A stretch of DNA of 64,000 bases. It comes from Sminthopsis crassicaudata. Taxonomy: Eukaryota. Numbering within the stretch: the stretch's first letter is position 1; each line of letters begins with the position of its first letter. The notes under the pieces are model-generated. The model was given only the letters and a program-made list of their open reading frames with translations. It was not told where the DNA came from and did not search any database. Below are positions 1 through 23,815 of the stretch, one piece after another. The position numbers and the translations under genes are program-made. The stretch is taken from positions 353,677,261-353,741,260 of the forward strand of contig NC_133620.1 in NCBI RefSeq assembly GCF_048593235.1, given 5' to 3'.

Positions 1-378
1 AAGAAAGAAAAAAGAAATGATGAGCAACCTGATTTCAGAAAAACCTGGAACTTATATGAATTTATATTGAGGGAAGTGGAAAGAGCCATCTGCATCCAGA
101 GAGAGAACTATGGAGACTGAATATGGATCAAAGCATATTATTTCCACCTTTTTCTTTCTTGTTTTATTTTTTCTTTTCTTTTTTAATCTAATTTTCCTTG
201 CACGGCATGACAAATATGAAAATGTGTTTAGAACTGTACATGTTTAACCTATATTGGATTGCTTGCTCTCTTGGGGAAGAGGGAAAAAGGAAGAAAAAAT
301 TGGAATACAAGGTTTTGCAAAGGTTAATGTTGAACCTATCTTTGCATGTATTTTCAAAAAATAAAATACTAAATCCTC
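1..378 (+). mobile_element. L1 LINE 3' end fragment (marsupial L1)
   Basis: Typical marsupial L1 3' UTR text ('aatgatgagcaacctgatttcagaaaaacctgg', 'tttaacctatattggatt', 'tttgcatgtattttcaaaaaataaaa'). Boundaries approximate. Confidence 0.75.
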
Positions 379-994
379 AAGGAGGTTACATTCTAAGAGG
401 GGAGACAACATATAAACAAATATGTATCAATGAGATATACACAGGATAATTTGGAAGTAATCTCAGAGCTCTGCAAAGAAGTGCTGGATGATGTTTATCA
501 GATACATTGTAGAGGGGATCCACAGTACTGGTTGGATTAGATGTTGCAAGGAAACTTTCAAATCTGTGTGTGTATATGTGTGTGTGTGAATTCTAGCTAT
601 ACAATTTAATTCATGCCTGACTTTGGGCAATGTACCTTAATATCTCAGGACTTCAATTTCTTCCTCTGTATAATAAGGGGTTGGTCTACATAGTATGTAA
701 ATTCTTCCATTTTAAATGTTATTTTTGGTCCCAATTTCAGAGATGAGGCCACTAAAGGGTAAGGATTGTATCCAAGGCGACGAGAAAATCAGGGACAGAG
801 CTGGGACTTGAAGCTGGTCTCCCTATCTCACAGAAAGTATTTTCTCCCTCAGTCAGTCACTTCAAATTGCCTCACAAAGCCCCAAGGACACTCTAATAAC
901 GTTTAACGAGCATTTATTGAAGGCCTTCTTATGGGCAAGGCACATTGTTAGACCCTGAGCATAATAAAAATAAGATGACTATTCTCTCCTCTTG

Positions 995-2210
995 TTCTAG
1001 GTTTTTGGACATCACTCTCACCTATCTATTTGACCACTTTCTTCTTTGTCTCCTTGAATGGATCCCTTTCCAAATTATACAAATTGTCTTCTAACCACAG
1101 CTGTCCCTCTGGGTTCTGTCCTGGGCCCGTTCCCTCTATGCGCTTTCATTTGGTGATCACATTGGCTCTCATGGATTTAATCACCATCTCTGTATGCTGA
1201 TGACTCTCAAATCTACCTATTCTGGCCCTGCCTCTCTGCTGAACTCCAATCTTGCATCTCCAACTGTGTGTATTCGAGGCAGACTTAGGTGACTTGCTCA
1301 AGGTCCTACAGTTAATGCCTGAGACCAGATTTGAACTCAGGTCCTTCTGACTCCGGGGAAGTGCTCTATTCACTGCACCACTTAGCTGCCTCACCCAAGA
1401 TATCGTGATCTCTATGTCCAGTAGACATTTTAAACTCAATGTGTCTAAATGAGAATTCATTTCTCTTTCCCTCCTGACCCCCCCCTCCTCCAACTCCTAC
1501 CTTCCCTATTACTGTAGAAGGTAATGCCATCCTCCCAGCTCCGCAGGCTGAAAACATAGAAGTCATTCTGCACTCCTGCCTCCCTGTATTCAAGCTGGCT
1601 GTTGATTTCAGCATCTTTGGAATATTCCTTCTCTCCTCTGGCACTGCTCCCACTGGAATCCAGGCCCTTAGGCCTAGATTATCATAATAGACCCTGGTGA
1701 TTCTGCCAATCTCAAATCTCCCTACTCCAAATCATTCTCCATTCAACCACTAAAGGGATTTTCCTAAAAAACAGGTCAACACCCTCAGGAAACCTCAGGG
1801 GTTCCCTGTCCTCCAGGAGTAAATGTAAAATTCTGTTTGGCATGCAAAACCCCTCCTTCCTATCCAGTTTTCTTACATTTTCCCAATATACATTCAATCG
1901 TCCAGCAAGAAGCCTTTTCAGGAACAAGAACTCTGGACAATCTCTCACCCCATTGCTTCCTCTCCCTCCTCTGATGAGACTAGGATCTGACTTCCTTCAA
2001 GACCCTTTCTACAGGAAGCCTCCTCCAAACCCTTTTAATTCCAAAGCAAGCTGTTCCTTCCTATTTATACATATGTAGCTGGTTTGTTGTCTCCTTCACA
2101 CCTAATTAGATTGTGAGCTCCTTAGGGTCAGGGACTCTCTTATGCCTTTCTTTGTATCCCCAGTGCTTTACCCCAGTTCCTAGCACCCCGTAGGTGTTTA
2201 ATGCTTACTG
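995..2210 (+). mobile_element. L2 LINE 3' fragment, interrupted by a SINE
   Basis: L2 hallmarks 'ttttaaactcaatgtgtctaaa' and the tail 'ttagattgtgagctccttagggtcagggac...cctagcaccccgtaggtgtttaatgcttactga'. Confidence 0.65.
1276..1392 (-). mobile_element. Marsupial CORE-SINE (WSINE1/MAR1-like)
   Basis: Reverse complement reads gaggcagctaagtggtgcagtgaatagagcac...gtcagaaggacctgagttcaaatctggtctcagg (tRNA-derived A/B boxes plus core). Confidence 0.8.
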
Positions 2211-2824
2211 ACGTCGGACTCCTAGGATTCGACTTGAAAATTCATTCTGTCCCGTTTGCCATTTGCTGTGCTGACTTACTCAGGGCCAGTCTTCACAGGG
2301 CTGGCTTCCTGCAGTCTGCCTTCTCTTCTGGTAGTTTTTGCATCGCAGGAGAGAGCTTGGAGAACTTTGATAGCCCCGAGGAGTCGGCCACGTCTCTTTA
2401 TCTCATCTTTAAAGGAAGAGGATTCTGTTTTAATCTAGGCAGTAAGGACACATTCCTTCCTTGGCAACAACGTACTGATAAGTATCCCGTTTTTCGGAAT
2501 CCGACCAGCATCTCCTCTTCCTCAACGGCTTAATTATTGAGGACTGAATAATGACCGGACACATGGCCACGGACTTCTGCTAACTTGTCATGACTGGGAG
2601 AGTTACACCTCCCCTCCCCCTCTCCGCACTGATCTCTGCGGTTCCTCGGGCCAGTTTAGTCAGGGGAGACAGGTTGATTGCAGTGAAGTGACTTGACCAG
2701 GGTTGCCAACAGCTTGGTTAAAGCCTCTGAGGCAGGATTCCAACGCAGGCACTTCTGATCCCAAACCCGCAGTTCTAGCTAGTCCCCGTGCTCCACAGTA
2801 GCTACATCAGACCAAGCAAAATTT

Positions 2825-2960
2825 GTTACCAGCAACTCTCCGGGGGGCGGCACCCACGTGTAAGTAGTGCTAAGACCCAGTAGCTGGAGCCCCACGTGCC
2901 TCACAAGCGGCTCGTTTAACACCCGGGGGGGCACGTGCACGAGATGGAGGCCGTTGATTG
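2825..2960 (+). promoter_or_regulatory. NAGLU proximal promoter in a CpG island, with three CACGTG E-boxes
   Basis: CACGTG at 2855-2860, 2893-2898 and 2932-2937; GTTACCAGCAAC (RFX-like) at 2825-2836; inverted CCAAT near 2957; CpG-rich from about 2200 to 3720. Confidence 0.6.
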
Positions 2961-3046
2961 GGCAGCAGCGGCATCGCCCCCTCCAGGGTCTTAGGCGATT
3001 GGTCGAGGAACTTGAAAGTTGGCTGCTGGGCGCGGAGGGGAGAGCG

Positions 3047-6000
3047 ATGGCGGCTGCCGCGGCGGTTCTCGCCTGCCTGCTCCTGAGCCGGGCGGGGGCC
3101 GATGTGGCTGGGGACGAGGCCCGCGAAGCAGCGGCCGTGCGGGGCCTGCTGTCGCGACTGCTGGGCGCGCGGGCGGCTGCCGGCTTCTCCGTGTCCGTGA
3201 ATCGCTCCCTGGCGCCGGCCCCGGGCGCCGATGCGTTCCGCCTGAGCGGCGGCGGCGGCGGCGGGACCCCCGTGCAGGTGGCCGGCTCCAGCGGCGTGGC
3301 GGCCGCGGCCGGACTGCACCGCTACCTGCGCGCCTTCTGCGGCTGTCACGTGGCGTGGTCGGGCGCGCAGCTGCGCCTGCCCGACCCTCTGCCCGCAGTG
3401 CCCGCGCCGCTGACCGAGAGCACGCCCAACAGGTAACGGGGCGCGGGGAGGCGGCCGCGGGGAGATCCCCGGGCCGAGCTCACCCCGCCCTCCGTGCAGG
3501 TACCGCTATTACCAGAACGTGTGCACGCAGAGCTACTCCTTCGTGTGGTGGGGCTGGGAGCGCTGGGAGCGTGAGATCGACTGGATGGCCCTGAACGGCA
3601 TCAACCTGGCGCTGGCCGCCGTCGGGCAGGAGGCCGTGTGGCGGAGGGTGGGTCCGGGCTGCCCTGAGAGCCGCTTCTGCGCTCCTCCGCAGCCTCCTCT
3701 CCCTCCTCCACCCCCCTCTGTGCGCGCTCCTCTCGCTGCCTCCCTCCTGGGGTCCTTCCTCTCTCCTCCTCGCCTCCCCCCTCTTCTTCCTCCCTCCCTT
3801 TTCCTCTCATATTTCCTCCTTCCTCTTCCTCCTCTCATTGCTTTCCTCCTCTTACTCTTCCAGTCTCCTCCCTTTCTCCTCCCTCCTTCCTCTTTTCTCT
3901 CTTCCTTTCCTTCTCTCCCTTTCTTTTTTCTCTTCTCTGTTTGGAGAAAAGCAAATTACGTCCTTCGCTGGGTCTCAGTTTATTTCTCTGTAATAGGAAA
4001 GATTGGCTCCCCTTCCATCCTGCCATTCCACGAATCTACTTCTAATTTGGCCTGATGGCTGCCTTAATTATCTAAGTTTGTTGGGAGGGGCCGAGCAAGA
4101 GGCATTCTGGAATATTTAGGAAAGTACTAGCCCGGGAGGCAGATGATTTCCCCTCCTCCCCTCCCCCCCACCCAGACTGGGACACCAGTTTTCTCCTGAG
4201 TCCAATGGGGATAATAATACCTGCCCTGTCTTACCACATGGAACTGAGGATAAAATGAAATCTGTATGAAGATAACTGCTTCACTCAAAGGAAGGCTGGT
4301 TATCAGGGTTCTCTCTCTTTTCTCCAGGTGTACTTGACCCTGGGCCTGAATGAGACAGAGATAGATGAGTACTTCACTGGCCCAGCCTTCCTGGCATGGG
4401 AGCGAATGGGCAACCTGCATAGCTGGGCTGGCCCCCTATCCTCCTCCTGGCATCGAAAGCAGTCTTCCCTGCAGGTAATGGGGCAGGAGAGGAGGCTTCC
4501 TGACTGAGAGAAGAGCTTCCTGGTGAGCCTGACCCAGCTGTCCTTCCTTTTCCCTCCCCAGTACCAGATTCTGGAGAGAATGAGATCTTTTGGGATGAAA
4601 GCAGTGCTTCCTGCATTTGCTGGACATGTCCCCAAGGCATTTACCAGGTGAGTTTACTAAGAGAGAGCAAGGCAGGCCCATAGATGGCAAAATTCAAAGA
4701 TCCCATCCAGGAGAGGCGGTGATAAGCATGGTATATCTGGTGTCAGAGGATCTGGGTTTCAGTCCTGATTATCTTAATCTTTCCTGGCCCGATTTCCTCT
4801 TCCCTATGATCAGGAGCTCAGACTGGACAGCCTGTATAGACCATCCTAGTGCTCAATTCATGTTCTTACAATCTCCCATCCAGAGGACAAGACATTCCAC
4901 TGCCTTTCTCTAGGAAAATTGCAGGGTGATAGAAAAAAGAGGAAACCTCCATTTGATTCTCAGATCAGACACTTGTTAGTCACCTTGGGTAAGGAACAAG
5001 TCATTTCCTCTGTCAAATGGCAGAAAAGTGAGATGTTTTGTTTCCAGCAGTAGTCATAGATCTGGAATTGGGAGGGACTTTAGAGGCCATCTCCTGTGGT
5101 GGGAAACCTTCTCTGTCCCCCAGCTGCCAGTACCCTCCCAACTAGGTGGCCTGGAATCTGCCTTGTGGGTCCATAACCGAACAGAGGTGCCTGATGCCTG
5201 TTAGGATGTAGCTCCTCATCTTATGTTTCCTCTCTTATGAGATCAGCTCTTCATCTTGTGCCTCCTCTGTTAGGATGTCAGCTCCTCACCTTGTGTTGCC
5301 TCTCTTAGAATGTCAGTTCCTCTAGGGCAAGCATGTTTCATTTGTCTGCATCTCACCATCTGTCACATAGCTTAAGCTTGAGAAGTATTTATTGCCTGAT
5401 TAAACTGAAGCCTGGAGAAGTGGTGTCTTATCTGTAGTCTCAGAAGAGGAAACTGCAAAGTTGGGATTTGAACTTGATTCCCTTATTTATAAACTCAGCC
5501 CTCATTCTACTGCTCCACAGAAAGATTATTCTAAAAACCCTGTATAAATGGAGAATTAACCTTATGGGAAGAAGCAGAAAGAACCTTGTTCTGGGGGCTG
5601 CCAAATTAGGATTCTGGTTCTGACTCTGCTGCTGACAAACTGTGTGACCATGAAAAAAAGCACTTCCCTACTTTGCGTGCTTCCACTCAATCAGTCAATC
5701 AAATATTCGGGTTTTTTTCTTTTTCTTTTTCTCTTTTTTTTTTTTCTTTCTTCAATCAAATATTTCTTAAGCAGTTAAACATATACTATGTGCTGGATTG
5801 GGTAGTGTGGAGGCAAATGCAAAGAATGAGATAATCCCTTCTGGAAATTAGCTTATGATCCAAGGTGAAGACCAACAACATATAAGTCTCTTGTGGGAGA
5901 TGTTATGGGCATAAGTGTCTGCAGCAGAACTTGAATCCTGACTCCAAGTCCAGCCATTTTTTCCCTCATACTCCTGAAGGAACCCCTGAAGGAAACTCCT

Positions 6001-6771
6001 ATTACAAAAGATGCTCGTGGGACTCTGTGCCTTCCACTAAATAGCATAAAGTTCTGACTATAAATTAATGATCACAATACAATTATTTTATTGACATTGT
6101 GCCAAAAAACAATGCTCACTTTATTTGGAGGTTCTTGCATAGGGTTCTATGAAGTTGAGTTGAGGTTTTTTGATTGGTTGTTTTGTTTTAGCATTTTGAT
6201 CATTGTGTTTTCATAGAATTGGTTTCCTTTGCATTTGAAGATTTTATTCTGAGGATGACTACACCAGACTGCCAAAGGAGGTCCATGTCCCTAAAAAGTT
6301 ACATATAAGTCCTTGATTCTGCTGGTTAATCCCTGAAGGAGGAAACACTTTGATACAAAGAAAGAGCTCCTTTGTGGGGCCTCTGTAAGGAGATTAGAGG
6401 GGGAGGCACTCTGGTCAAATTTTCCCTCCATCAATATAATTCTGCCCCTCATCTCTCCCATCCCCTGTCTGCTCCCTCAATCTCCCTTCATCATATCTCT
6501 CCCTTCCCTTCTAGGGTGTTCCCTCAGGCCAATGTCACCCATCTGGGCATGTGGGGCCACTTCAACTGTACTTACTCCTGCTCCTACCTTTTAGGCCCTG
6601 AAGACCCCTTGTTACCTGTGGTTGGGAGCCTCTTCCTGAGGGAGCTGACTCAGGAATATGGTACTGACCACATCTATAATGCTGATACCTTCAATGAAAT
6701 GGAGCCCCCTTCCTCTGAGCCAGCTTACCTGGCTGCCACCACAGCTGCAGTCTATGAGGTCATGATTGCAG
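3047..6771 (+). CDS. NAGLU: alpha-N-acetylglucosaminidase (GH89), coding exons 1-5
   Basis: Exons 3047-3432, 3500-3647, 4328-4474, 4562-4647, 6515-6771; all GT-AG and in frame. Signal peptide [18 protein letters not shown]; motifs [56 protein letters not shown]. Exon 2-5 sizes (148/147/86/257) match human as recalled. Confidence 0.95.
5201..5323. repeat. Degenerate 34-35 bp tandem repeat, about 3.5 copies
   Basis: Units start at 5201, 5235, 5270 and 5305; consensus ttaggatgtcagctcctcatcttgtgttycctctc. Confidence 0.75.
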
Positions 6772-7142
6772 GTGAGGAGAGCAAGGTGCTGAGGGAGATG
6801 GGCAAGGGGAGAGATCAGTCAGATGGGGAGGGAAGGGGGTGTCATAAAGGAAAGGAGAGGTTTGGGGAAAGTGGGAGGGGGTGTCAGGAGGCTGATGCTG
6901 AGGATAAGCTGGCTGTTAGTGACTGTGAGCCTGATTCACTGCCTGAAGGATCCTGGAGAAACCTCTTAAATCTCTCTCAGCTTCAGTTTCTTCTTCTGTA
7001 AAATGGAGATAATAGCACACACTGCCTTGTGTTACATGCTTTGCAGATCTTGAAGCCCTCCATAAATGTGAACTGCTCTCATGATCCCTGCTCAAAGCCT
7101 GGCCCCAGTGTTCACAGCTTCATTACAAAATGTTCTCCAGGA

Positions 7143-7881
7143 ACATTTTGTAACTGTGCCCAAAGGACTATCAAATTGTGCCCTTTGATCCAGTGATGTC
7201 TCTCTTGGCCCTGTAACCCAAAAGAAATCATAAAAAAGGGAAAGGGACACACATGTGCAAAAATATTTGTGATAGCCCTTTTTGTAGTGTCAAGAAACTG
7301 GAAACTGAGTGGATGCTCATCAGATGGAGAATGGCTGAATAAATTATAGGATATGAAGATTATGGAATAGTATTGTTCCATAAGGAATGATCAGTAGGAT
7401 GATTTCATTAAGGCTTGGAGAGACTTACATGAACTGATGCTAAGTTAGAATCAAGAAAACTGTACACAGCAACAAGATAATGTGATGATCAACTGTGACT
7501 GACTTGGCTCTTTTCAACAATGAAGTGATTCAAGCCATTTCCAATAGACTTATGATGGATAGAGCCATCGGCTTTCTGAAAGAGTAGTGAACGTGTATCA
7601 CGACATAGTATTTTCACCCTTATTATTGTTTGCTTTTTTTCCCTTTTCCATTTTTTTTTTCCTTTTTGATCTTATTTTTCTTGTGCAGCATACAATGTGG
7701 AATATATTTACAAGAGTTGCACTTGTTTAACCTATATTGGATTAATTGCTGCTTGAGGAGAGGGGTTGGGGAAAGGGTGGGAGAAACATTTAAAACAAGG
7801 TTTTGCAAGGGTGAATTTTAAAAACTATTTGCATGTATTTTCAAAAATGAAAAGCTATTATTAAAAATAAAGAAATTTTTA
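7143..7881 (+). mobile_element. 5'-truncated L1 in NAGLU intron 5 with a diverged target-site duplication
   Basis: L1 ORF2-end/3' UTR ('ccctttgatccag', 'aagaaactggaaactgagtggatgctcatcagatggagaatggctgaataaatt') and A-rich tail. Flanks aaaatgttctccagga (7127-7142) and aaaatgtcctctggga (7882-7897) are 13/16 identical. Confidence 0.85.
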
Positions 7882-8432
7882 AAAATGTCCTCTGGGAGGA
7901 ACCACAGTCTTCTCATGTCCTAAGTACTGGAGTTGGACTAAGCAGTCCCTCTTGCTCCAATTCCCTTCCATTTTGTGTATGGGAAGGTAAATTCTGAGAT
8001 CCCATGGCTGCTGAGTGCCAAGGCTCAGGCTGTAGTCTGAGTCTCCTGACTCTACTGCTTACTGTCTTAGGCCTTCTCTTGGGATTCTTTTGCCCTCCCT
8101 CCTTCCCATTCCCACAAGCCATCCCAAGAAGCTCTCACTCCCCAGCCTATGCCCATCTTCCCTTTCTTCTCTGCATTGCTTCTCACCTTGAGACGCTGCC
8201 TGAAGGAACTGCCTCAACTTTCCTCCCTGAAACTGCTCTTAGGGCCCCAGGGATCTCTTAATTGCCAGATCTGAGAGTATCTTCTCCAAACTTGTCCTTC
8301 CTGGCCCCCCTGAAATCTTTTACATTTTGATTCCTTCTCTATGTGAGCTGTTCTTTGGTTCTCCTTGATCACTCCTCAGTCTTCTTTACTGGAACTTTGT
8401 CTGAGTCACTCCCACTGACCCTGAGAGAATGT

Positions 8433-8651
8433 GCCCCTCGATGGAAGCTCTTTGTGGAGATGCTGGTGAAGAGCCTGGCTGAGGGCACCCCCTTCCACCA
8501 GAGCCAGTTTGAGAGTGAAGCCTTGCTGTTAGGACAGAACTTTGTACTGGGGAGGCAGAAGTTTCCCACCCAACCTCAGGGTGACACTGTTGATCTTGTC
8601 AAGAAATTTTTCCTCAAGTATTACCCAAGGTGTCAAGCAGGAGCTTTGTGA
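8433..8651 (+). CDS. NAGLU: C-terminal remnant of the NAGLU terminal exon (last ~72 codons)
   Basis: [72 protein letters not shown] aligns to human ...[26 protein letters not shown]...[21 protein letters not shown]. Similarity stops abruptly upstream of PRW. Confidence 0.9.
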
Positions 8652-8993
8652 CTCACCACCTCCACCTGTGCCACCTGGATTCTCCAGTAGTTCCTAAGAC
8701 TCTTAAGCTCCCTCTTGGGACCCTGAATCCTATCAGTGGCTTAACTTGGGACCCTTGGGAGGAGGGGATTGGTTTATAAACCATGGGAAATTCTTGCAGA
8801 TGGTCTCTCTCCCTTGCTGTGTCTGGTTCCTGGATTCAGGATCTGGACTGAGCTCTCTGAAGTGTGAGGAGGGAAGAAGAGGGCAGGTCTAGGATAGGAA
8901 GTGGATCCTGTGAATTGAGAGTATGGAGCATTCTCCATGTCATTCTCCTCTACTCCAGAAATGGAAATCAAGCCATTGTTTTCTCATTCAATC

Positions 8994-8999
8994 AATAAA
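8994..8999 (+). terminator. Probable NAGLU polyadenylation signal
   Basis: AATAAA about 340 nt after the NAGLU stop. Confidence 0.55.
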
Positions 9000-9055
9000 T
9001 CAATATTTCAGCATGTCTGTCTAGGTCTATTCTCAGAGGGGCCAAGCAGCAATAT

Positions 9056-9060
<5 letters not shown>

Positions 9061-9105
<45 letters not shown>
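9061..9105. repeat. (CA)n microsatellite
   Basis: About 22 CA units between NAGLU and HSD17B1. Confidence 0.95.
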
Positions 9106-9107
<2 letters not shown>

Positions 9108-9502
9108 AGAATAATCAAGTGGAGATGACTAAGTCCATCTACTCCCTCCTCTTCCCATTAGCTTTGAAAGCAACTGTATTTGGCTCTGGGCTGCTGCCCT
9201 TTGCCTCAGTTTCCCCTACTCAGCCTTCAGAGGTGGTAAGACTTCTGTGATGCTTGCCAGCAGATTAAGCTTGGGGAGAAAGGGGGGAAAGTGTGAAGAA
9301 TGGGGCAGTGAAAGCTCACTGGCCTTGAGATAATGAAGTAGACACAACAAAGGAGACTGGGGGCTTCAGAAAAAGTAGGTGCCCTTGGGGCTCAAGGGCT
9401 GAGCCAGTCTGCATCCTAGTCTTTTTTGCTTCTAATTTCTTCCAACCAGTCCTTTCTCTGTCTTTCAAATCTGTCCCTTCCTGGTCTCTCTGCTCTTTCT
9501 CT

Positions 9503-11545
9503 ATGGAAAGAAAGGTAGTTCTCATCACAGGCTGTTCCTCCGGAATTGGTCTGCATCTAGCTCTGCGACTGGCTGCTGATCCTTCAGGCAGCTTCAAAGG
9601 TGGGAAGAGGAGAGCAGGGGCTAAAGACCAGCTATGGAGGTTGGGTCCTGGGCCCTGACTTCAAGTGAGGAGAGAAGGGAAGATGTGAGGTCCTAATTCC
9701 TGGCAATCCACCCTCCTGCTCAGTGTACGCCACTCTTCGGGACCTCGGGTCTCAAGGTCCTTTGTGGGAGGAAGCAAGAGCTAGAGGCTGCCCTCCAGGC
9801 TCCTTGGAGACGCTACAGCTCGATGTGACCGACCCCAGCTCCGTGGCAGCTGCCCGAGACCATGTGACTGAGGGCCGTGTGGACATCCTGGGTGAGACTA
9901 TTGAGACATTTGGGCTCCCTTCTCTCCTTTGGCAGAGGTGGGGTGGGTTTACGCTCCTAGAAGCATTTCTTACCTTCTTTCCTAGTCAGTTAGTTAGAGG
10001 CTGGAGGTGCTTGGGGATCTGAGCGAGCTTTGGAGTTTCCAGTATCTTGTCTGCTTTCAACTTTGTTCTGTCCCATCCGTAAAGACTTAGAAAAGGGTAC
10101 TGAATATAGTTGTTAAATAGTGTTTTCTGCATGCATGAAAAACTGAGCTGGAACGCTTGGAAATCTGAGGATGCCAAAGAGTGGTTAAATTATTAAATTT
10201 GACCTGGGATGTTCCTTCTGCTTCTGGAGGGGAGGGGGAGCAGTAGGGTAGGGACGAAGCGTGGGCTCCTCTCTTCAGTATGTAATGCTGGTCGTGGCCT
10301 GCTCGGGCCACTGGAGGCCCACACAGTAGAGGCTGTGGGCGCCGTGCTGGACGTGAATGTGATGGGAACTATCCGAATGCTCCAAGCTTTCCTTCCCGAC
10401 ATGAAACGACGCCGATCTGGCCGGGTGCTTGTCACTGGGAGCGTTGGCGGGCTGATGGGTGAGTTGGGAAAAGGCAGATGTTGATTATAGGGGTACATGA
10501 GTCGAGCGTAAGCGCTGATCGGGTGTGGGGTTTGGAACATCCAGGATTTAGCTCAGTCCTCTTCTCTCCTGACTCCCAAAGGCTTGCCCTTTAACGCAGT
10601 TTACTGTGCTAGCAAGTTTGCCCTGGAGGGTCTATGCGAGAGTTTGGCTGTGCTGCTGCTGCCCTTCGGAGTCCAGTGAGTAAGCAGGATACCCTCAGGG
10701 ACAGCCGGGGATCCTGCCCCACTAGAAGCTGTGCCTCTTCTTCCACATCCCCTTTCTACAAGTATATTGATCCCCTATCAGAAGCCTTGAACTGTTACAA
10801 AGCTTCCTAGCTAAGTAACAGTTTCTGGGGGTTGTTTCCTCAATGCAAAACAAAACAAAACAAAAAAAAAAGCCCCATTTTTAAAGTCCGTTCTAATACC
10901 AGCGTTCTGATTCCCGGACTTAGGTGCCTTATCATCTTCTAATTCTGGGGGTGGAGGGTGCTGGGACAAGGGAGGCCAGAGGGGGGACAAGGATGACGCC
11001 TCTGGCCCCATCCCCGTTCTTTCTGCGCGCTCAGCATTAGCCTCATAGAATGTGGCCCTGTACGCACCGCTTTCCAAGACAAGCTAGAGGGGGGTCCTGG
11101 CGGAGTACTGGGAAGCGCCGACTTGGAGACCCGGGCTCTCTTCTCCCGCTACCAGCGGCACTGTGAGCGGCTCTTCCGGGAGGCGGCACAGGACCCTGAA
11201 GACGTGGTGGAGGTGCGGTTAGCGGGGACTCCCTCTCTCCCGGGTGGGACACAGGGAAGATCTGAGGAGGCCCGGAGCTGGGGAGAAGGCGACCGGGGCT
11301 GAGGTCCTGTCTACCCTTCTATCCCAAGTTCTTTTTTTTTTTTCTTCTCACAACAGGTGTTCATTCGAGCGCTCCGCGCCCCTTGCCCTGTCCTGCGCTA
11401 TTTCAGCACTGAGCGATTTCTGCCACTAGCCGGACTCCGACTTTCTGATCCTGGAGGCTCTCAATACGTAGATGCCATGCACTGCTCTGTTTTTTCCGAG
11501 CCGGAAGAGGCCAGTAGTGAATCCTGTGCCCCTGAAGGCCCTTGA
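9503..11545 (+). CDS. HSD17B1: 17-beta-hydroxysteroid dehydrogenase type 1 (SDR family), 301 aa
   Basis: Exons 9503-9599, 9724-9891, 10279-10458, 10582-10675, 11035-11212, 11357-11545 (906 nt, GT-AG). Motifs [11 protein letters not shown] (Rossmann), CNAG, VTGSVGG (catalytic Ser), YCASK (YxxxK), IECGPV. Confidence 0.96.
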
Positions 11546-11849
11546 GTTAGAATCACCCGTTTTTTTAAAGCAAACACATGCTCAGTAACTTGGTCTACAT
11601 ATAGTAATTGGTGACTTTTTTGCAAAACATAATTTTCCATAGGGAAGCAGAGATGGGCGCTGTTTTAGGGGCTGGCTTATTGTATTGGAAAAACAACTTT
11701 TGATTGGGTAACAGATTAGATCAGTTCTTACTACTTACTTTGTCAATATGTGACTTAAATTATTCTCCTCTCCCTTCCTTTCCCCCCCTCCCCCGTTTTT
11801 CCTGTGTAAAATTAATTCCTCAAACAAGCTTTTTTAAAATTTCAAACGC

Positions 11850-12090
11850 CTATCGTGTATAAGTCTCTGCAAATATTAGGAAATTGGATTGGTGGCATAG
11901 ATCAGCAATATCAAATATTCAGCTACACTGAATTTGACTTGAACCAGATTAAAATGTAATTTGGAAATGTTTAATAAAATAATACAACAGAACATGAGTA
12001 ATGTTAATATGAGATTTTCTAAGTTAATATGCAACTGAAGGGATCCTTATGAATGATTTAATGGTTCCTTTTTGAGTGTGACACTACTGG
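11850..12090 (-). mobile_element. Probable non-autonomous DNA transposon (MER-like); related copy at ~27650-27765
   Basis: Shares 'aaccagattaaaatgtaatttggaaatgtttaataaaataa' with an opposite-orientation copy near 27700-27765; ends in a hAT-like 'gtgtgacactactg'. Family not identified. Confidence 0.4.
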
Positions 12091-13321
12091 AAAAGATGAT
12101 CCTTCCCAGAACTAACAGTTCTTGGTTTTAAATTACTTTAAACTTCAACTTTGGTTATTGGTCCAGTTTTCTCATCTGAAAAGTGGAGAAACCAGCTCTG
12201 CCTGTCTCACTGGCTATTATGGCAAACTGATTGAGATAAGTGGTGTAAATGAAATTTTAAAAGTGCAGAGTTCCTGAAAATATGAGCAATCATTACCAGG
12301 AAATGTGGGGACAAGCACTGACTAGAGGCAATCTGTCCTGTACTGATTCTCCCTTCTCCCATTACTCCCTGCCCAGCTGCTGGAGGAGGTCCCTTCTAAT
12401 CCCCTACTACAGCTTTCTTCCCAGAAAAGCTATTGAGGCAAACTAAGGAGGGAAATTACCCTCCACAATTAACTCCAACAAGACATATCTTTCCAACTGG
12501 CTGTCTGCCTGTCTACTCTGTAGAGCAAAGTGAAAGGAAAGGTCAGGGTTTTCCCTCAACATATACCCTTTTGTTCAAGGCAGATGGCTGAATAAGGGAA
12601 GACTGGATTTTGACCCTTGAAACTACATTTGAGAGGGGCTATAGTTATTGTACACTGTCACATAAGGGACAAAAGGGAAAAGAAAGGATCACTAAAAAGA
12701 ATAAGGGGCTGTGATCCTTGGCACAGGGATAGAGCTGAGGAAACAAGGTATAAAATAATGAACTCTGGTGGTGGAGGATTAAGTGTTCAAGGAATTGATT
12801 TAAGGAGGAGAGAAGGAAAGGGGAAACATGAAGAAAGTAGGAAGGTCAAGGTGAGTAGAAGATTAAGAAGCAGAGTGAAAAGAGGATATGGACAAGAGAG
12901 ACAGAAAGGAGGCCTGTAATGGACTTGAGGATAGAGAAAACAGCTTGATCCTCATGGGACTGACCCTGGTTTTTTTCCTCAGGATTCTGCTACTGCTACT
13001 CCTTCAACTCCTTTTTTCTTTACTCTGCCTGGAATCCACTCAGGTACAGACTTGTTCCAATAAACCAGTCCCAAGACCATGAAATCTTATGAAAGGGTAC
13101 AGACTGAAATTTATCTCTATGGGCTGGGATTTTTCAGATCCTTGACTTGGATTATGTTCCAGTAAGCAATCATTCAACAAACATCTATAAAACAATTGGT
13201 AGGCAGTTCTGAGAACAGAAAGACAAAATGGTTCCTGGCCTCGAGGAAGAAATGTACATGTACAATATGTAATATGTGCAATATTTGCATATTTACACAC
13301 TTCTTCCCCAAAATGTATCCT

Positions 13322-13600
13322 ATTTTTTTGCTAAGCTTTTATTTTTAATACTATTATTTTCAAAATACATGCAAAGATAGTGACATTCACCCTTGCAAAA
13401 TCTTGTGTTCCAAAATTTCTCCCTCCCTTACACAGTAAGTAATCCAATATGTTAAACATGTGCAATTTTTCTATACATATTTCCATATTTATCATGCTGC
13501 ACAAGAAAAATCAGATCAAAAAGAGGAAAAATGGGGGGGGGGAAAGGTGAAAATGTTATGTTGTGATCCACATTTAGTCCCTATAGTCCTCATTTTGGAA
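13322..13600 (-). mobile_element. L1 3' end fragment
   Basis: Reverse-strand L1 3' UTR ('ttttcaaaatacatgcaaagatag', 'cccttgcaaaatcttgtgttccaaaattt', 'aatccaatatgttaaacatg'). Confidence 0.8.
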
Positions 13601-14390
13601 AAATGCATCCTCTTTTGGACACTTCCCCAAAGGGCTACTACTACCTACAGGGTTAGAGGAGACCTTGTGGATACAGGATTTTAACACTACAATTCCCAAA
13701 CCGCCCCTGGTTTTTCTCCCATTGACAAAAGGCCAGGAACATATTTGCTCAAAGCAAAGACTTTCATTAAGATGGCACACAATAAGACCCACAAATCCTG
13801 AGACATACTCTCCCATAAGTACACAGAACAGCCCTGAGAAAAACGGCCCCAAACTCTAGAATACAGTGGTAGGTAGTAAGGCACACACAGGCAAAGCTCG
13901 GAACTCTTGATACTGAAGGGCTTCAGAGTTTATCCCGGAGGACTCAGAAATCTTACTCCAGTATGGCAGTAACCAACGAGGGGAGGGGGTGGCAATTGCT
14001 TAAAGAGGCTTATAGGTCTTCAGTCTCTGCTGAGCAATTTCTGTGTCTATAGCAAGCTCTTTGTGGCCAAAGGTCTCACTCCTTGAAGGTGTTTCCTCCC
14101 TCCAGTGCCTGCTTCACTTTATATTTATCCGGGGGACCTCTCTACTTCCCAAGAGTGTCTTGATTCTTTCAAAGCTGCTCTACCAAGACGTGGTGGATTG
14201 TGTTGTCTCCTGGTTGAGTTATCAATAGGTATATATTCTAAGTTGTATTTACTCCAGTGGCCTAACTTCAGGGAGAAGCTATTTAAAGACTCTATGGCAG
14301 TGGACCTCAAACTTTTTAAGTAAAGGGCCAGTTCACTATCCCTCAGACTGTTGGAGGGCCAATCACTGTCTGGGGCCCCTCAGCCCAGGG

Positions 14391-15350
14391 CCGGAAGTGT
14401 GCGTTGCTAACCGTTTAGGTTCACGTCACTTCCGGTCTGATTTTGCCATGACCCAGCGGCCCCATCTAGCCCGCAGGCCGTAGTTTGAGGACCTCTGCTT
14501 TATGGCTCTATTAATGAATCGTTTAAGGATAATTTTCAACTCCACCAGTGGTTGATCAATGACTGATCTTTTGGTTTCAATAAGATCTGTCTCCCTCCAG
14601 TGGAGGAAAACAAAAGTATTCCCATGTGCTCGTACTTAAACGCTTGCGCCTCAATTTCCTCAGGTGCAAAATGTCGGATATTACAAGATGGCCTCAGGAG
14701 TCCTCTCCATCTCTACACCTAGGCTTCTGAGTCTCACTTCTCTCAGAGATTCTTTTACCTTGGGGTAAAATGACCGTCGAAATTAGCCGCCAAAATGGCC
14801 TCCAGTCCTGACAAAACCCCGGACTCCACTCGCCTCCGCCCCTGGATGCCTTAATTTCCCACGTGATAGCCCCGCCCTCTCCCATATCTCGCGAGATCTG
14901 GCTCTCGGGGTCCGGGATAGCCAGGATTTCTCCGAGCCCAGAACCTCGAGCTGCCTGATCCAGGACAGGAGCACTTCCGGGTGGAACCCGGGAAGCGGCA
15001 GGAGCTGCAGCGACATCGGGAGAGGGAGCGGCCCGAGTCTGGGAGCTCCGTGAGTACCGGGGAATTAAACCCGGGCCCAGAACCACTAACAAACTCGACC
15101 CGTCACTGCCAGCAGGCGGCTCCGCCCCTTGGATACAAACTCCGCCCCTTGGAGATAGCTAGCCTTCCCCAAGTTTCTCTCTCCTCCTGGAAAACTAGGG
15201 AAGACGAGGGTCCTCACTCTCGGATTCCCTGCGCCGCGGTTCGGCCCCACTCTCTCCTTTTCCAATTAAAAATCAGGTCGCGCATGCGCGAATGATCCAC
15301 CAGGGGTCAGTATTCTAGGTCGCTGGTAGTCGAAATTTACGCATGCGCGC
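14391..15350 (+). promoter_or_regulatory. COASY CpG-island promoter
   Basis: ETS CCGGAAGTG 14391-14399; TCACGTCA+CTTCCGG (CRE-ETS) 14421-14435; YY1-like CAAGATGGC 14684-14692; TCTCGCGAGA (BANP/ZBTB33 type) 14887-14896; NRF1-like CGCGCATGCGCG 15279-15290. Confidence 0.65.
14950..15049 (+). other. COASY: Probable non-coding 5' UTR exon of COASY
   Basis: Strong donor CC|GTGAGT at 15049/15050 and matching acceptor ctcccacAG|G at 15489/15490, upstream of the ATG. The 5' end is a guess. Confidence 0.5.
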
Positions 15351-15530
15351 AAGCAATCCTAATGAGTTGTGTGGTGGGGGAGGTCTTGTCAAGGTTCTTC
15401 CACAGAACCATGCATTTGCGCGGCCATTCACATGACTGCTAGTGCTGTGTGCCCCCAACCCTGTGCCTCTCATGTGTGCCCTCCCACAGGTGCCATCTAG
15501 CGGAACCGTCGGTGACTTGGCAGTGTCAGC

Positions 15531-18500
15531 ATGTCTGCCTTCCGATCTGGCCTTTTGGTGCTAACCTCCCCGCTGGCAGCCCTGACCCCGCGCCTGGCAC
15601 CCATTCTGACCTCCGCAGCCCGGCTGGTGGAGAAGACGCTGTACGTGCACCTGCAGCCTGGCCTCAGCCTGGGTGGGCCGGCCCAGCCTCACTCCAGCCA
15701 CGTGCAGGCCACCGTGGAGATCATCAACCTCATCACTGGGCTCTATGCTGGGGCCGATGCCTATAGGCACCTGGACATCCGAGTGCTGCTGACCAACATC
15801 CGTACAAAGAACCCAACCCCTCCACCTTCCCTTGGCTCTGTGCAGAACCTAGCCCACCCCCCGGAAGTGGTGTTGACAGACTTCCAGACCCTTGATGGGG
15901 GCCAGTACAACCCAGTCAAGCAACAGCTAGAGAGATATGCCACCAGCTGTTACAGCTGCTGCCCCCAGCTGGTCTCTGTGTTGCTCTATCCAGACTATGA
16001 TCCAGGAGATTCTTCTACAGACCCATCAGTACCCTATTCCTCTGCTCTGTGGTCAGCCTCCCCTGTGCCTAAAGCTCCCAAACACCCCTTACAGGGCTAT
16101 AACCATGTGGCAGTAGGGGGAACGTTTGACCATCTGCACAATGCTCATAAGTTGTTGCTTACGGTGGCCTGCCTCTTAGCCCAAAAGAGGCTTGTGGTTG
16201 GAGTAGCAGACAAAGACTTGTTGGAAAGTGAGTAGATGAGTCTGGGGGGTTGACTTGGGGTGGGAGGGTTGGCAGAGCAGGGTAAGATAGATGTTCAAGT
16301 TCAGTAGTCGTGGAAGTGACCTTTGGACATATGCACTTTATTCTTGCTTCCTTTGGATCTGAAGTGTGGGTAGTAACTACGTTAAGCGGAGCCTCAAAGG
16401 CTATTATCTGTGTCTTTCAGACTCCTCCAGGCTTCTCTATCATGATCTCCCTTTTCTAGTTGGCAGATATCCTAGTCATTATAGCCTCTTCCATTAGTAA
16501 CCATTGCTCCTTCTCTCAATCAGCCCCAACAAAACAGACATTTGGTAGCCATCATTTTTCACAATCATAGTCATCTTCTTTTTGTTTTTAGTTTTCTTCA
16601 GACCCCACCATCCATTTTCTCTCACTTCTTCCCTTAGATAAAGTGCTCCGGGAATTACTCCAACCATATACAGATAGGGTGAAACATCTGAGTGAGTTCC
16701 TGGTGGACATGAAGCCATCCTTGATCTTTGACATAGTCCCCCTCCTAGATCCCTACGGTCCAGCCGGCACTGATCCTTCCTTGGAGTGCTTGGTGGTTAG
16801 CGAGGAGACTTATCGTGGGGGGTTGGCTGTCAACTGTCGACGCCTTGAGAATGTAACTCCCTTGGGGAAAATGGGCAGAGGGAGTGGTTGGGGATAGGAA
16901 GGGTGGGTGTATATGTGTTAAGAATGGGTTCTCCAAAGATGGGAGGAGTGATACTTTAGAGAGATACTGGGAATGAAACAGAAAAGCTTGCAGCTTGTGT
17001 GCCAGTTCCTGGGTTGGCTATGGTTGGGTCCTTAATTTCACCCTCTGAGTGGTTTGTATGGGTTAAAAATGAGTCCTGGGTTTCAAGGCAGAGCCCTGTT
17101 AACTTTCTCCATTTTAAAACATCACCCTTTGTTACCTCTACATTTTGCCACAGGGTCTGGAAGAGGTGGCTTTGTATCAGATTTTGTTGCTGAAGAACCC
17201 AGACCACAGTGAGAATGAAGAAGACAAAGTTAGCTCCTCCAGCTTCCGTCAGCGATTGCTGGGAACCCTCCTTCAACCCCCAAATGTAAATACCTTCCAG
17301 GTCCAGGGGATAAAAATTCTAGCCGCCCCTGAGATGGGGAGTACCAGCCCTTAGTGGGAAAATACCTTTCATTACTCTGATATGGGCAACCTATATGCAC
17401 ACATAGGGGCCCAAATGGTTGTCTTGATTTCAATCTTCTAATCCCCCATAGATGGCCACTCCATCCTTGGCTTTTTCTCCTTTTGGCAGAAGAGACCAGA
17501 CCTCCCCTCCAATATCTATGTTGTGGGACTGACAGGGTCGAGTGGCTCTGGCAAGACTTCAGTGGCCATGTTACTGCAAGACCTGGGGGCAAAGGTCATT
17601 GATAGCGACCAGCTGGGACACCGGGCCTATGCACCTGATGGCCCTGCCTACCAAACTGTGATAGAGGCCTTTGGAACTGGTATGTCTTGTAGTGAAAAGT
17701 GAAATTGTAGGGGGCATGGGGAAGGAAGGGAACCAAGAATACAGAAACATAATACTTCTCTTGCTGAGATTCTTATTTTTGGCATCTTAGATATTATCCA
17801 AGAAGATGGAACCATCAACAGAAAGATTTTAAGCAGTCAAGTGTTTGGGAACAAGGTGAGTATCTCTATCTCTAAATCTTTAAAGAGGTCTGTGGCCCAC
17901 ACCCATTCTCCTATTTCCCCCGGACCATGCAGCCTTATCTCAAAGCCCCTTTTTTCCTAAGTTTCTATTTTTTATTGGTAAGGAAGTCTTTTAGTTATCT
18001 TCTTGTAGCTCTCTCCTCCCCCTCCCCCCATCTCCACTTCCGTGCTTTGTTGGTGCAAACCTAAGAGCAGTTGGTTTGTTCTGTCACTAGAAAAAGCTAA
18101 AGAACCTCACCGACATTATATGGCCAGTCATTGCCAAGATGTGTCAAGAGGAGATCAAAAAAGCTGCAGCTGAGGGTGAGTGTGAAGGACAAGAGTTTCA
18201 GAGGACTGATAGGAAAGTTCTTCCCTTGTCCCCTTCCCCTCCCTTCCCCTCCATTCCAGGGCCAGGGCATCCTGCCTAGCTGCCAGGCAAACACATCCCA
18301 GGGAATCTCTGATCCAGGGCAAGTGGCTGGGATGAGAGATCAGTAGAATGACTGGGGTCCACCTGCAGGGAAGACCATATTCGTGATTGATGCGGCCTTG
18401 CTACTGGAAGCCGGCTGGAACAACATGGTCCACGAGGTGTGGACAGTCATTGTCCCAGAGACAGAGGTAACTGGCCCCTCCTATTTGACCATTCCCCTAC

Positions 18501-18872
18501 CTCAGCCCCCACTCTGGGCTTCTGAATGGTTAATGCATTATGTTCTTGGGACTCCTCCGAAGTATCCTCATTGACTATGTGGGTGTCTTCCAGGCAATAC
18601 GGCGCATCATGCAGCGTGATAGTCTGACCGAAGCCGCAGCCCAGGCCCGCCTGCGAAACCAGATGACTAATCAGCAGCGGGTGGACCAGAGCCATGTGGT
18701 GTTGAGCACACTTTGGGAGCCCCATATCACCCGAAGACAGGTAAGGGGGTTGAATAAGAACAAGAGGGAGGAAGGAGGAGTCCTACTCAACCCTAAAATC
18801 TTTTCCTACAATTTTCTTCCGAAGGTGGAAAAAGCCTGGGCTCTGCTGCTGGAGCGCATCAAAAGCCAGTAA
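15531..18872 (+). CDS. COASY: Bifunctional coenzyme A synthase (PPAT + dephospho-CoA kinase), 558 aa
   Basis: Exons 15531-16227, 16638-16852, 17154-17285, 17490-17679, 17791-17855, 18091-18175, 18369-18466, 18594-18740, 18825-18872 (1677 nt). [13 protein letters not shown]-terminus, [11 protein letters not shown] (HxGH-type), VVSEET, KVSSS, P-loop [11 protein letters not shown]. Confidence 0.96.
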
Positions 18873-19174
18873 TCGACTGGTGGACGCTTCTCTTTCTGAT
18901 CCTTGATTACGATGATTGATGTCTATGGTGTGGGAAAGCCCTTGGGGCAGGTCCCGCCCTCCGCGGGGCTGGGCCCAGACCCACGCAGTGCTGAGCTGCT
19001 CCGGCGGCGCGGCGGCGGGGCTCCTTGGAGGCCAGGTTGGAGGCTCGGGCCGCAGGTCGAACCCCGGTACCCTCTGCCGGCCTAGAGGAAGGGCACAGCA
19101 CCCCACTGTCCTCCCTGCTTGGTGTGTCTGGAACCCCACGGCTGGCTGGGACCAGGGATGAGGGCACGGAACTA

Positions 19175-19180
19175 ATTAAA
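19175..19180 (+). terminator. Probable COASY polyadenylation signal (ATTAAA)
   Basis: First ATTAAA/AATAAA-type hexamer after the COASY stop, about 300 nt downstream. Confidence 0.45.
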
Positions 19181-19299
19181 GCCGAATTTTCCTGTAAGAC
19201 TCTGGCTTTCTGTGCTCCTTGCTTCTTGGGACGGTGGCTGAGTGAGCCATTCTTAGGGGCCCCAGACTAAATTGTGGCTGGCCCCGCTGCTGGCACCCT

Positions 19300-19758
19300 A
19301 CGACCGTAATCAGGCCTGCATTCTGGCCATAGTAATCAGGCCCGGCTAAACGTCTGTGGCATTGTGGGAATTGTAGTCACTGAGCGGTCGAAAGAGAACG
19401 TTTCCTCCTTTACGTTACGTAAAGCAAACGCATGAACAAACGTGTCTTGTAGAAATCCCAGACTCCGCCTCCCCCCCCTTTTTTTTTTGAGGATTACTCG
19501 AATCTCAGAAAATGTTAATTTAGGGGAGAGAGTGCATAAATAGAGGTAGAGATTGCTGTTATTGCTCCATACTGGAATTTAAATTCTGGCCTAACACCCT
19601 TTTAAAAATCTATTCCATTTCGCCCTTCTCTGCGCAGGCGCAGCGCGCCTTCATCTCATGCCTTGGGGTTGGTGAACTATGGACCATGTGGGCTTGGGTC
19701 CCGCCCATGGGGGGGGGGGTGCCCTGCACGCGGCGCTTCCGGTTCGTTTGGTCTGACA
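19300..19758 (+). promoter_or_regulatory. MLX promoter (CpG island)
   Basis: ZNF143/SBS motif gcattgtgggaattgtagtc (~19359-19378, reverse = GACTACAATTCCCACAATGC); TTACGTAA 19415-19422; NRF1-like TGCGCAGGCGCA 19631-19642; ETS CTTCCGG 19736-19742. Confidence 0.65.
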
Positions 19759-22726: not shown

Positions 22727-23483
22727 CTGCTTGCCTTTCAGACAACACTATTGAAATATAGAACCAGGAGGTTTGTTCTGGTTCTGACATCTCAAACATT
22801 TGCTTTGTTTGTTGGATTTTGGACAGCTTCTGATTAATTTATAATTTATTTTGTCAATATTAAACAAACCCATTTCATCTGTGGAAGTTCTAGGGGCCAT
22901 TGAACTTGTCCCCCTAAAAATCACTTCTGGCATTTTCCTTCATAAGCTTCCAATTTAAACTGAAATCAGGTATTTATTTGGAAGCTACTAACTATAGCCG
23001 CCACTGTGATATGTCTTATAGGAGTGATAGTGAGATTGTGTAGAGTGATAGTATTCTGCCAGCAATCTGGTAAAGGCAGAAAAAATATTTACGTAACCAT
23101 GAAGTATCACAGGTACTTATCCCCATTGGTGCTGCCATGTCGTGTCCATGGCACAGATAAAATTTTTAGCATGTTATATAGGGATTTTATCCCTAGAGAG
23201 TCTGCCACAGTAATCAGAAACTTTGGCAGATTTCTTAACTTTTATTTCAATGTGATCTTTACTTCAATGTAAATCTCACAATTTTACTAATTTTATTATT
23301 TTTTTTTGGTCAGTCAAGTCTTGTGGTACCTCATGCTCATTTGCCATCTCTTCACATGAAGAGCTCATTGGGGATAGATGTTGATTCTTCTGTCCCATTT
23401 CTTACTTGCTGCCACAATTTCTATCAGGAATGAACCAGGAGTTAGTGGAGAAACTTCTATCTCAAATATATAGAAGCCTACTT

Positions 23484-23515
<32 letters not shown>

Positions 23516-23815
23516 CAGGCTTACAAAAGGAAGACTTTACCATCTAATGGAAATTAAATATTTTTATATCAAATTGTGATTGCAATAAAATTTACTAAAT
23601 GCTTAAGCCAAAATTCATTCTGATTTTTTATCAAGTCATATCCACTAAACTGATTTAATATAATGCATAACCACTTGCCTCCTTAGTACTAATTAGTCTA
23701 GTTACTTTCCTCTAAATTAGACTCTAGTCACAAAGGGCACCTGAAGTGTCAAAATAACCCCAATACAACCAGTTTAGGAAGTTTCTTCTGACTTCATTAT
23801 TCAGAAAGAGGTTCC

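Follow-up and report, generated by a model that had tools for sequence, protein, structure and literature searches.

Human NAGLU is the GH89 alpha-N-acetylglucosaminidase whose gene is that of Sanfilippo B (MPS IIIB). In the GH89 literature its nucleophile glutamate is E446, and the human gene order around it is ATP6V0A1-NAGLU-HSD17B1-COASY. A second kind of system is represented in human by GBA1/GBAP1 and CYP21A2/CYP21A1P, pairs of a functional gene and a duplicated, non-processed pseudogene between which sequence is exchanged. The stretch of DNA analysed here, 64 kb of the Sminthopsis crassicaudata genome (the window), includes a NAGLU gene. As a case it is an ordinary one: a redundant duplicate in decay, subject to gene conversion. 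Very probably the window holds the dunnart copy A of an old, conversion-homogenised inverted pair of NAGLU genes; this copy has been truncated in the dunnart lineage, and copy B supplies the enzyme. Full-text literature searches found no paper on a marsupial NAGLU duplication or on the truncation of copy A.

The window corresponds to about 353,677,261-353,741,260 of S. crassicaudata CM109184.1 (GCA_048593235.1), an assembly that a 2026 preprint (10.64898/2026.03.30.708387) cites as the reference for the fat-tailed dunnart; an independent nanopore-based dunnart assembly and long-read cDNA (including cerebellum) also exist (PMC13408496). There is no N in the whole 64-kb sequence, and window positions 1-17084 are 100% identical to positions 6955-24038 of the XP_074117695.1 locus (L002). 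In the NCBI annotation the NAGLU gene of the window has a separate “NAGLU-like” protein, XP_074117695.1 (P0272), of 353 aa, which is encoded exactly by the window in exons 1-5 and a terminal coding exon at 7047-7084.

The duplicated unit, copy A, spans 2932-9556 on the + strand, as do all the features described below, and was delimited by blastn of the copy B locus (L001) against the window and by synteny. Homology between the two copies begins about 115 bp 5' of the ATG and fades near the start of HSD17B1 (copy B lies at L001 9886-17497). Exon 1 (3047-3432, ATG at 3047) lies in a CpG-rich region and matches residues 1-129 of P0272 exactly; the GC fraction reaches 0.78 in window 3001-3500. Intron 1 (3433-3499), embedded in this 78% GC DNA, measures just 67 bp and is common to both dunnart copies. 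Exon 2 (3500-3647), with canonical AG/GT splice sites, exon 3 (4328-4474) and exon 4 (4562-4647) also match P0272 exactly. The N-terminal alpha/beta domain is complete, with residues 29-117 of P0272 aligning to profile positions 1-82/82 of Pfam PF12971 (E 3e-23).

Exon 5 (6515-6771) carries the acid/base glutamate, E316 in human, and is supported by the match to P0272, by the structure of human NAGLU (4XWH, whose chain begins at human residue 24) and by Pfam. Its 85 translated residues (6516-6770) align to 4XWH 233-317, that is, residues 256-340, with E 1.7e-42, and to positions 128-208/336 of the Pfam NAGLU TIM-barrel profile. The FNEM motif is found at 6690-6701, where its glutamate codon (6696-6698) aligns with 4XWH, and the donor is canonical (GCAG|gtgagg). 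Similarity resumes at 8433 with a relic of exon 6 (8433-8651), consisting of its last 72 codons and the stop (8649-8651), which shows 97.7% nucleotide identity to copy B. This tail (APRWKLF...) aligns to 4XWH 649-719, residues 672-742, with E 1.1e-23, and to positions 207-267/268 of the NAGLU_C profile. The original prediction, made from the window sequence alone, had placed the end of exon 5 at 6771 and the return of NAGLU similarity at 8433, and both boundaries are borne out by the 4XWH and Pfam matches. Two domains are incomplete. The PF05089 barrel is encoded by copy A over profile positions 1-209/336 only (1-335 in the copy B protein, P0254), and of the 268 positions of the C-terminal helical domain PF12972 only 207-267 remain.

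The residues between these two blocks are encoded nowhere in the window. With eight full-length NAGLUs as tblastn queries (turtle, dunnart paralog, Antechinus, bilby, sugar glider, wallaby, opossum and mole), human residues 341-671 found no match anywhere in the 64 kb on either strand, and among the stop-free segments in 6700-8700 none was NAGLU-like besides exon 5 and the tail. The region of the nucleophile glutamate (human E446, APEG/VPEG) was likewise unmatched throughout the window and is present in the paralog P0254. A search with the 106-aa frame at 8331-8648 as query found no short read-derived protein fragments carrying the tail. The 4XWH alignment and tblastn thus agree with the earlier reading that residues of about 341-672 are unencoded here, and that the acid/base glutamate survives in its FNEM motif and the E446 region does not.

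Alignment to the intact paralog defines the lesion. Identity is 96.3% between L001 9886-14117 and window 2932-7142 and 90% between L001 14128-14386 and window 8168-8426; L001 16424-17497 aligns with window 8432-9556. The segment absent from the window is L001 14387-16423, 2,037 bp in length and not the roughly 1 kb first estimated. Exon 6 of copy B begins at L001 15433. Intron 5 has thus lost some 1.05 kb together with its acceptor, and exon 6 has lost 331 codons, or ~0.99 kb. The lost codons cover TIM-barrel profile positions 210-336, including the nucleophile glutamate, and about three quarters of the C-terminal domain. The junction (8430-8433) shows intron-5 homology to about 8430, a GT filler at 8431-8432 and exon-6 homology again from 8432/8433; both parental flanks of the deletion end in AT, giving an AT microhomology. 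Two non-repeated sequences, intron-5 DNA and exon 6, are joined here with no gap present. From its sequence the lesion looks like an end-joining deletion, and this junction supports the view that the internal deletion in copy A is real.

In the remnant of intron 5 (6772-8430), the 5' part has homologous sequence in the same intron of copy B and Antechinus B. The 1.66 kb of the remnant were found to contain what had been proposed for them: a MIR-like stretch, which is old and common to the window and the paralog, a 739-bp LINE-1 (L1) at 7143-7881 and unique intron-5 DNA at 7898-8430. Inside the MIR-like stretch lies the alternative terminal coding exon of the NCBI model (7047-7084), encoding DLEALHKCELLS followed by a stop. 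The L1 is a 5'-truncated, sense-oriented 3' end, identified by target-site duplications, repeat matches and a weak ORF2 match. The duplications, at 7127-7142 and 7882-7897, are 16 bp long with 13/16 bases identical, and the site is single in dunnart B and Antechinus, both of which lack the L1. This 739-bp repeat has an A-rich 3' end and six further partial copies in the window. The match of its frame to the C-terminus of LINE-1 ORF2 is weak (PDB, E 0.03), and a Pfam scan of the frame returned no match. The first sense-strand AATAAA hexamers of copy A fall inside the L1, at 7338 and 7866. Beyond it, the intron-5 sequence of window 7882-8426 is unremarkable and can be aligned with Antechinus B; it includes the island between L1 and deletion (8168-8426) that is only 90% identical to copy B. 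Copy B has an intron-5 deletion of its own, of about 290 bp relative to the window and Antechinus B (L001 ~14117-14128; window 7898-8168; L003 14188-14497). Downstream of the tail, a hexamer scan places an AATAAA at 8994-8999, in the original 3' UTR, which is likely the native poly(A) signal of copy A, its function being read from position and motif. In the 3' flank, window 9040-9105 holds a (CA)n microsatellite of ~50 bp, where the paralog and Antechinus lack ~49 bp.

The intact paralog, copy B, is XP_074117693.1 (P0254), a complete “NAGLU-like” protein of 744 aa with both catalytic glutamates. It is located at 353,543,935-353,550,577 of the same chromosome, on the opposite strand, about 130 kb upstream of copy A. 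P0254 aligns end to end with human NAGLU 4XWH, with FNEM and VPEGI both present, contains all three Pfam domains and has an exon 6 that is an open frame of 403 codons. A search with exon 5 hit a full-length turtle NAGLU, and this led on to the marsupial NAGLUs. The match of P0254 to exon 1 and the tail of the window is 99%, and its 90% cluster includes the second dunnart protein, XP_074117695.1 (P0272). Since copy B is intact, the dunnart lysosomal enzyme is not lost and the window gene is a decaying spare. The original prediction had assumed a single NAGLU gene, which the paralog on the same chromosome contradicts; its proposal of a real internal deletion (about 341-671) holds, given the clean microhomology junction and the absence of a gap, but its notable loss of a lysosomal enzyme does not.

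The genes called around copy A are V_ATPase_I upstream and adh_short, then CoaE/CTP-transferase, downstream. HSD17B1 (301 aa, 9503-11545) and COASY (558 aa, 15531 onward) were transferred from L002 and lie on the + strand. These neighbours match the ATP6V0A1-NAGLU-HSD17B1-COASY order, which places copy A at the ancestral site (site A). At the other end of the comparison, the unit (window 9401-9556; L001 ~17350-17497) fades where the annotated HSD17B1 starts, at about 9503 of the window, and copy B seems to retain a remnant of the DNA between NAGLU and HSD17B1, perhaps with the first HSD17B1 bases. Site B lies downstream of CAVIN1, where Antechinus, Macrotis and Petaurus each have a full-length NAGLU; for dunnart B, collinearity of its flanks with the Antechinus locus points to the same adjacency.

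Three other marsupials keep exon 6 at site A. The Monodelphis gene is full-length with HSD17B1 and COASY downstream, and the Dromiciops gene is full-length with the whole of exon 6, its locus (L004) being collinear with both window flanks. In Petaurus, a 587-aa NAGLU model with TIM-barrel and NAGLU_C matches lies between ATP6V0A1 and HSD17B1, beside a B gene of 744 aa. Two full-length NAGLU genes are annotated in each of Monodelphis, Gracilinanus and Dromiciops, and the borders of the unit are equal for dunnart B versus dunnart A and for dunnart B versus Dromiciops A (L004 9884-19495). Judged from these annotated genomes, two NAGLU genes are the normal marsupial state. As a pan-marsupial location site B rests on Australian species, and in the didelphids (Monodelphis and Gracilinanus) no neighbour gene was found within 10 kb to place the second copy.

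The tammar wallaby (Notamacropus eugenii; P0242, P0244, P0275) has two NAGLU-like genes on one chromosome, one of which includes a 263-aa isoform ending after exon 4. Two wallaby isoforms of 749 aa are unlike each other in exon 5 and in the early part of exon 6, and look like models in which exons from two copies are combined. In Petaurus, all 587 residues of the site-A model P0389, which has no N-terminal domain, are identical (100%) to the site-B protein P0233; either the copies were converted very recently or there is a problem with the assembly or the annotation.

The protein tree joins the two copies of each species. Support for this is 100/99 for the pairs of Dromiciops, Petaurus and Sminthopsis and weaker for the didelphid pairs (75/98 in Monodelphis, 71/92 in Gracilinanus). 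The DNA comparison, which comprised the window, dunnart B (L001), Antechinus B (L003) and Dromiciops A (L004), gives the same pairing for the dunnart. Over most of 3143-5520 and 6020-6460, identity is 98-100% between dunnart A and B; between dunnart B and Antechinus B it reaches only 85-95% in these columns. When Dromiciops serves as the fourth taxon, 126 informative sites of the 5' unit pair the window with dunnart B, and the two alternative pairings get 5 and 4; in the tail support is mixed (9/6/2). The UTR beside the tail is closer to copy B in the window than copy B is to Antechinus. The density of A/B differences, taken per 300 bp, is a mosaic ranging from 0.3% to 8%, with 0.4% over 2932-4731, 4.7% over 5632-6231, 0.3% over 6232-6531 and 8% over 6832-7131. 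Together, the informative sites, the borders, the species-wise pairing and the mosaic point to repeated gene conversion between the inverted paralogs. On this reading, exons 1-4 and the 72-codon tail look untouched because conversion with B still overwrites the flanks of the lesion.

Other origins of the pair were considered. A recent duplication in place of conversion is disfavoured by the occupation of both sites in Petaurus and Sminthopsis, by the location of site A or site B in four further species, and by the identical borders of dunnart B against Dromiciops A. Independent duplications into the same two sites do not explain the pairing, the borders and the mosaic. A retained haplotig or false duplicate is rejected, as the copies have different flanks and opposite orientations in an arrangement conserved in other species, and a processed pseudogene is rejected by the presence of introns in copy A.

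These observations suggest the following history. The two marsupial NAGLU genes would go back to an old event that duplicated about 7-10 kb in inverted orientation, after which copy A stayed between ATP6V0A1 and HSD17B1 and copy B lay downstream of CAVIN1. Gene conversion would then have kept A and B alike within each species. In the dunnart lineage copy A would have gained the sense-oriented L1 in intron 5, and an end-joining deletion of 2.04 kb would have removed the remainder of this intron with its acceptor, along with 331 codons of exon 6. Copy A would now yield no active enzyme, and at most truncated transcripts (for 353 aa, or in frame for 415 or 431 aa by way of cryptic acceptors), with lysosomal alpha-N-acetylglucosaminidase supplied by copy B about 130 kb away.

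The coding differences between the copies are few. Exons 1-4 of A and B differ by two synonymous changes, and exon 5 and the tail show more differences; the tail has a single amino-acid difference from copy B. Polarised with Antechinus and Dromiciops, the exon-5 replacements A283G, F289L and A338V are new in copy A, at positions that are invariant in all other marsupial sequences and identical in human; T301 and K733 of copy A are retained ancestral states. New replacements thus number three in copy A and none in copy B, counts that are very small. The three changes at invariant positions nonetheless fit a relaxed constraint on copy A, as far as such small numbers allow. The preservation of the tail is no argument for selection, since its 97.7% identity extends to all sites and the UTR is also B-like.

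In the NCBI model, on which the expression of copy A rests as a computational prediction, exon 5 is spliced to 7047 and a stop follows after 12 codons, giving the 353-aa protein. Acceptors at 8380 and 8428 would lead in frame into the tail, for products of 431 and 415 aa, and from AGs that would open an exon at 8406 or 8426 the tail is not read in frame. Any of these predicted products would have about 209/336 barrel profile positions and no nucleophile glutamate, so that an active glycosidase is very unlikely. We infer that copy A is transcribed and lacks function. Of the attributes of a duplicated pseudogene it shows an intact paralog in the genome, retained introns and a disabling lesion of 2,037 bp.

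The deletion was seen in one assembly, that is, in one haplotype of one animal, and might be a real but segregating allele, with two complete NAGLU genes in other dunnarts. Beside an intact paralog a null copy A could indeed drift at any frequency. However, the exon-5 replacements and the diverged target-site duplication of the L1 (13/16) suggest long disuse, even if they leave the deletion itself undated, and a segregating allele is regarded as unlikely. The deletion is presumably fixed in the species.

An assembly artefact is very improbable. In that case exon 6 would be whole in the true copy A, and some 2 kb would have been lost during assembly or polishing, perhaps through confusion of A and B reads. 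Stretches of several hundred bases in which A and B are 99-100% identical could confuse assemblers, but the junction does not lie between repeats: it runs from unique intron-5 DNA to mid exon 6, with microhomology and two filler bases, and its left flank, at 90% identity, has diverged more than any other part of the unit and is therefore easy to place. An artefact is also at odds with the gap-free window, with the separate 353-aa NCBI model of copy A that ends in intron 5, and with three private exon-5 replacements, as expected of a copy already out of use.

That copy A is kept to encode a short product of 353, 415 or 431 aa, or a functional RNA, is scarcely credible, and none of the observations calls for it. 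Its open exons 1-5 with canonical splice sites, its in-frame acceptors at 8380 and 8428 and its tail with only one changed amino acid would suit such a role. However, conversion explains the intact look (similarity is as high at synonymous sites and in introns as at replacement sites), the product would have an incomplete barrel without the nucleophile, the exon-5 replacements fall at invariant positions, and two nearer AGs lead out of frame.

A truncated copy A next to an intact, converting copy B is thus the preferred reading, and it removes a false alarm, as the dunnart, an emerging laboratory marsupial, is not naturally deficient in the Sanfilippo B enzyme. In practice it sets a trap, for the syntenic “ortholog” in the dunnart is the broken copy, and orthology calls, knock-outs, disease models and selection scans on marsupial NAGLU must handle two near-identical copies. 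In evolutionary terms, the locus also illustrates how gene conversion can hold an old duplicate in inverted orientation uniform and how the parental copy is afterwards lost. A more far-reaching version, in which the inverted pair flanking CAVIN1-ATP6V0A1 is pan-marsupial and has been homogenised since before the radiation, and dunnart copy A is still transcribed and still exchanging with the working gene, is a speculative and rather unlikely one. If it were true, the truncated copy A could pass defects to the only working gene, or its shortened protein could have an effect of its own.

Compared with human NAGLU, the dunnart gene shares the six-exon layout and the position at ATP6V0A1/HSD17B1. 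However, its copy A lacks residues 341-671, including the nucleophile glutamate, and the window gene is not the only copy of the dunnart. Its closest relative, dunnart copy B, is 96.3% identical over 4.2 kb including introns, and differs in having a full exon 6 and no intron-5 L1. With GBA1/GBAP1 and CYP21A2/CYP21A1P the pair has in common a nearby paralog, retained introns and a disabling structural lesion, as well as a patchy near-identity to the functional gene that points to ongoing conversion. By contrast with these systems, the dunnart NAGLU pair is inverted, with its members about 130 kb apart, and it appears old, because both genes are found in opossums, Dromiciops and Australian marsupials. 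It also differs in which member was disabled: in the dunnart the ancestral site has the disabled gene, and the working gene is the one that was relocated.
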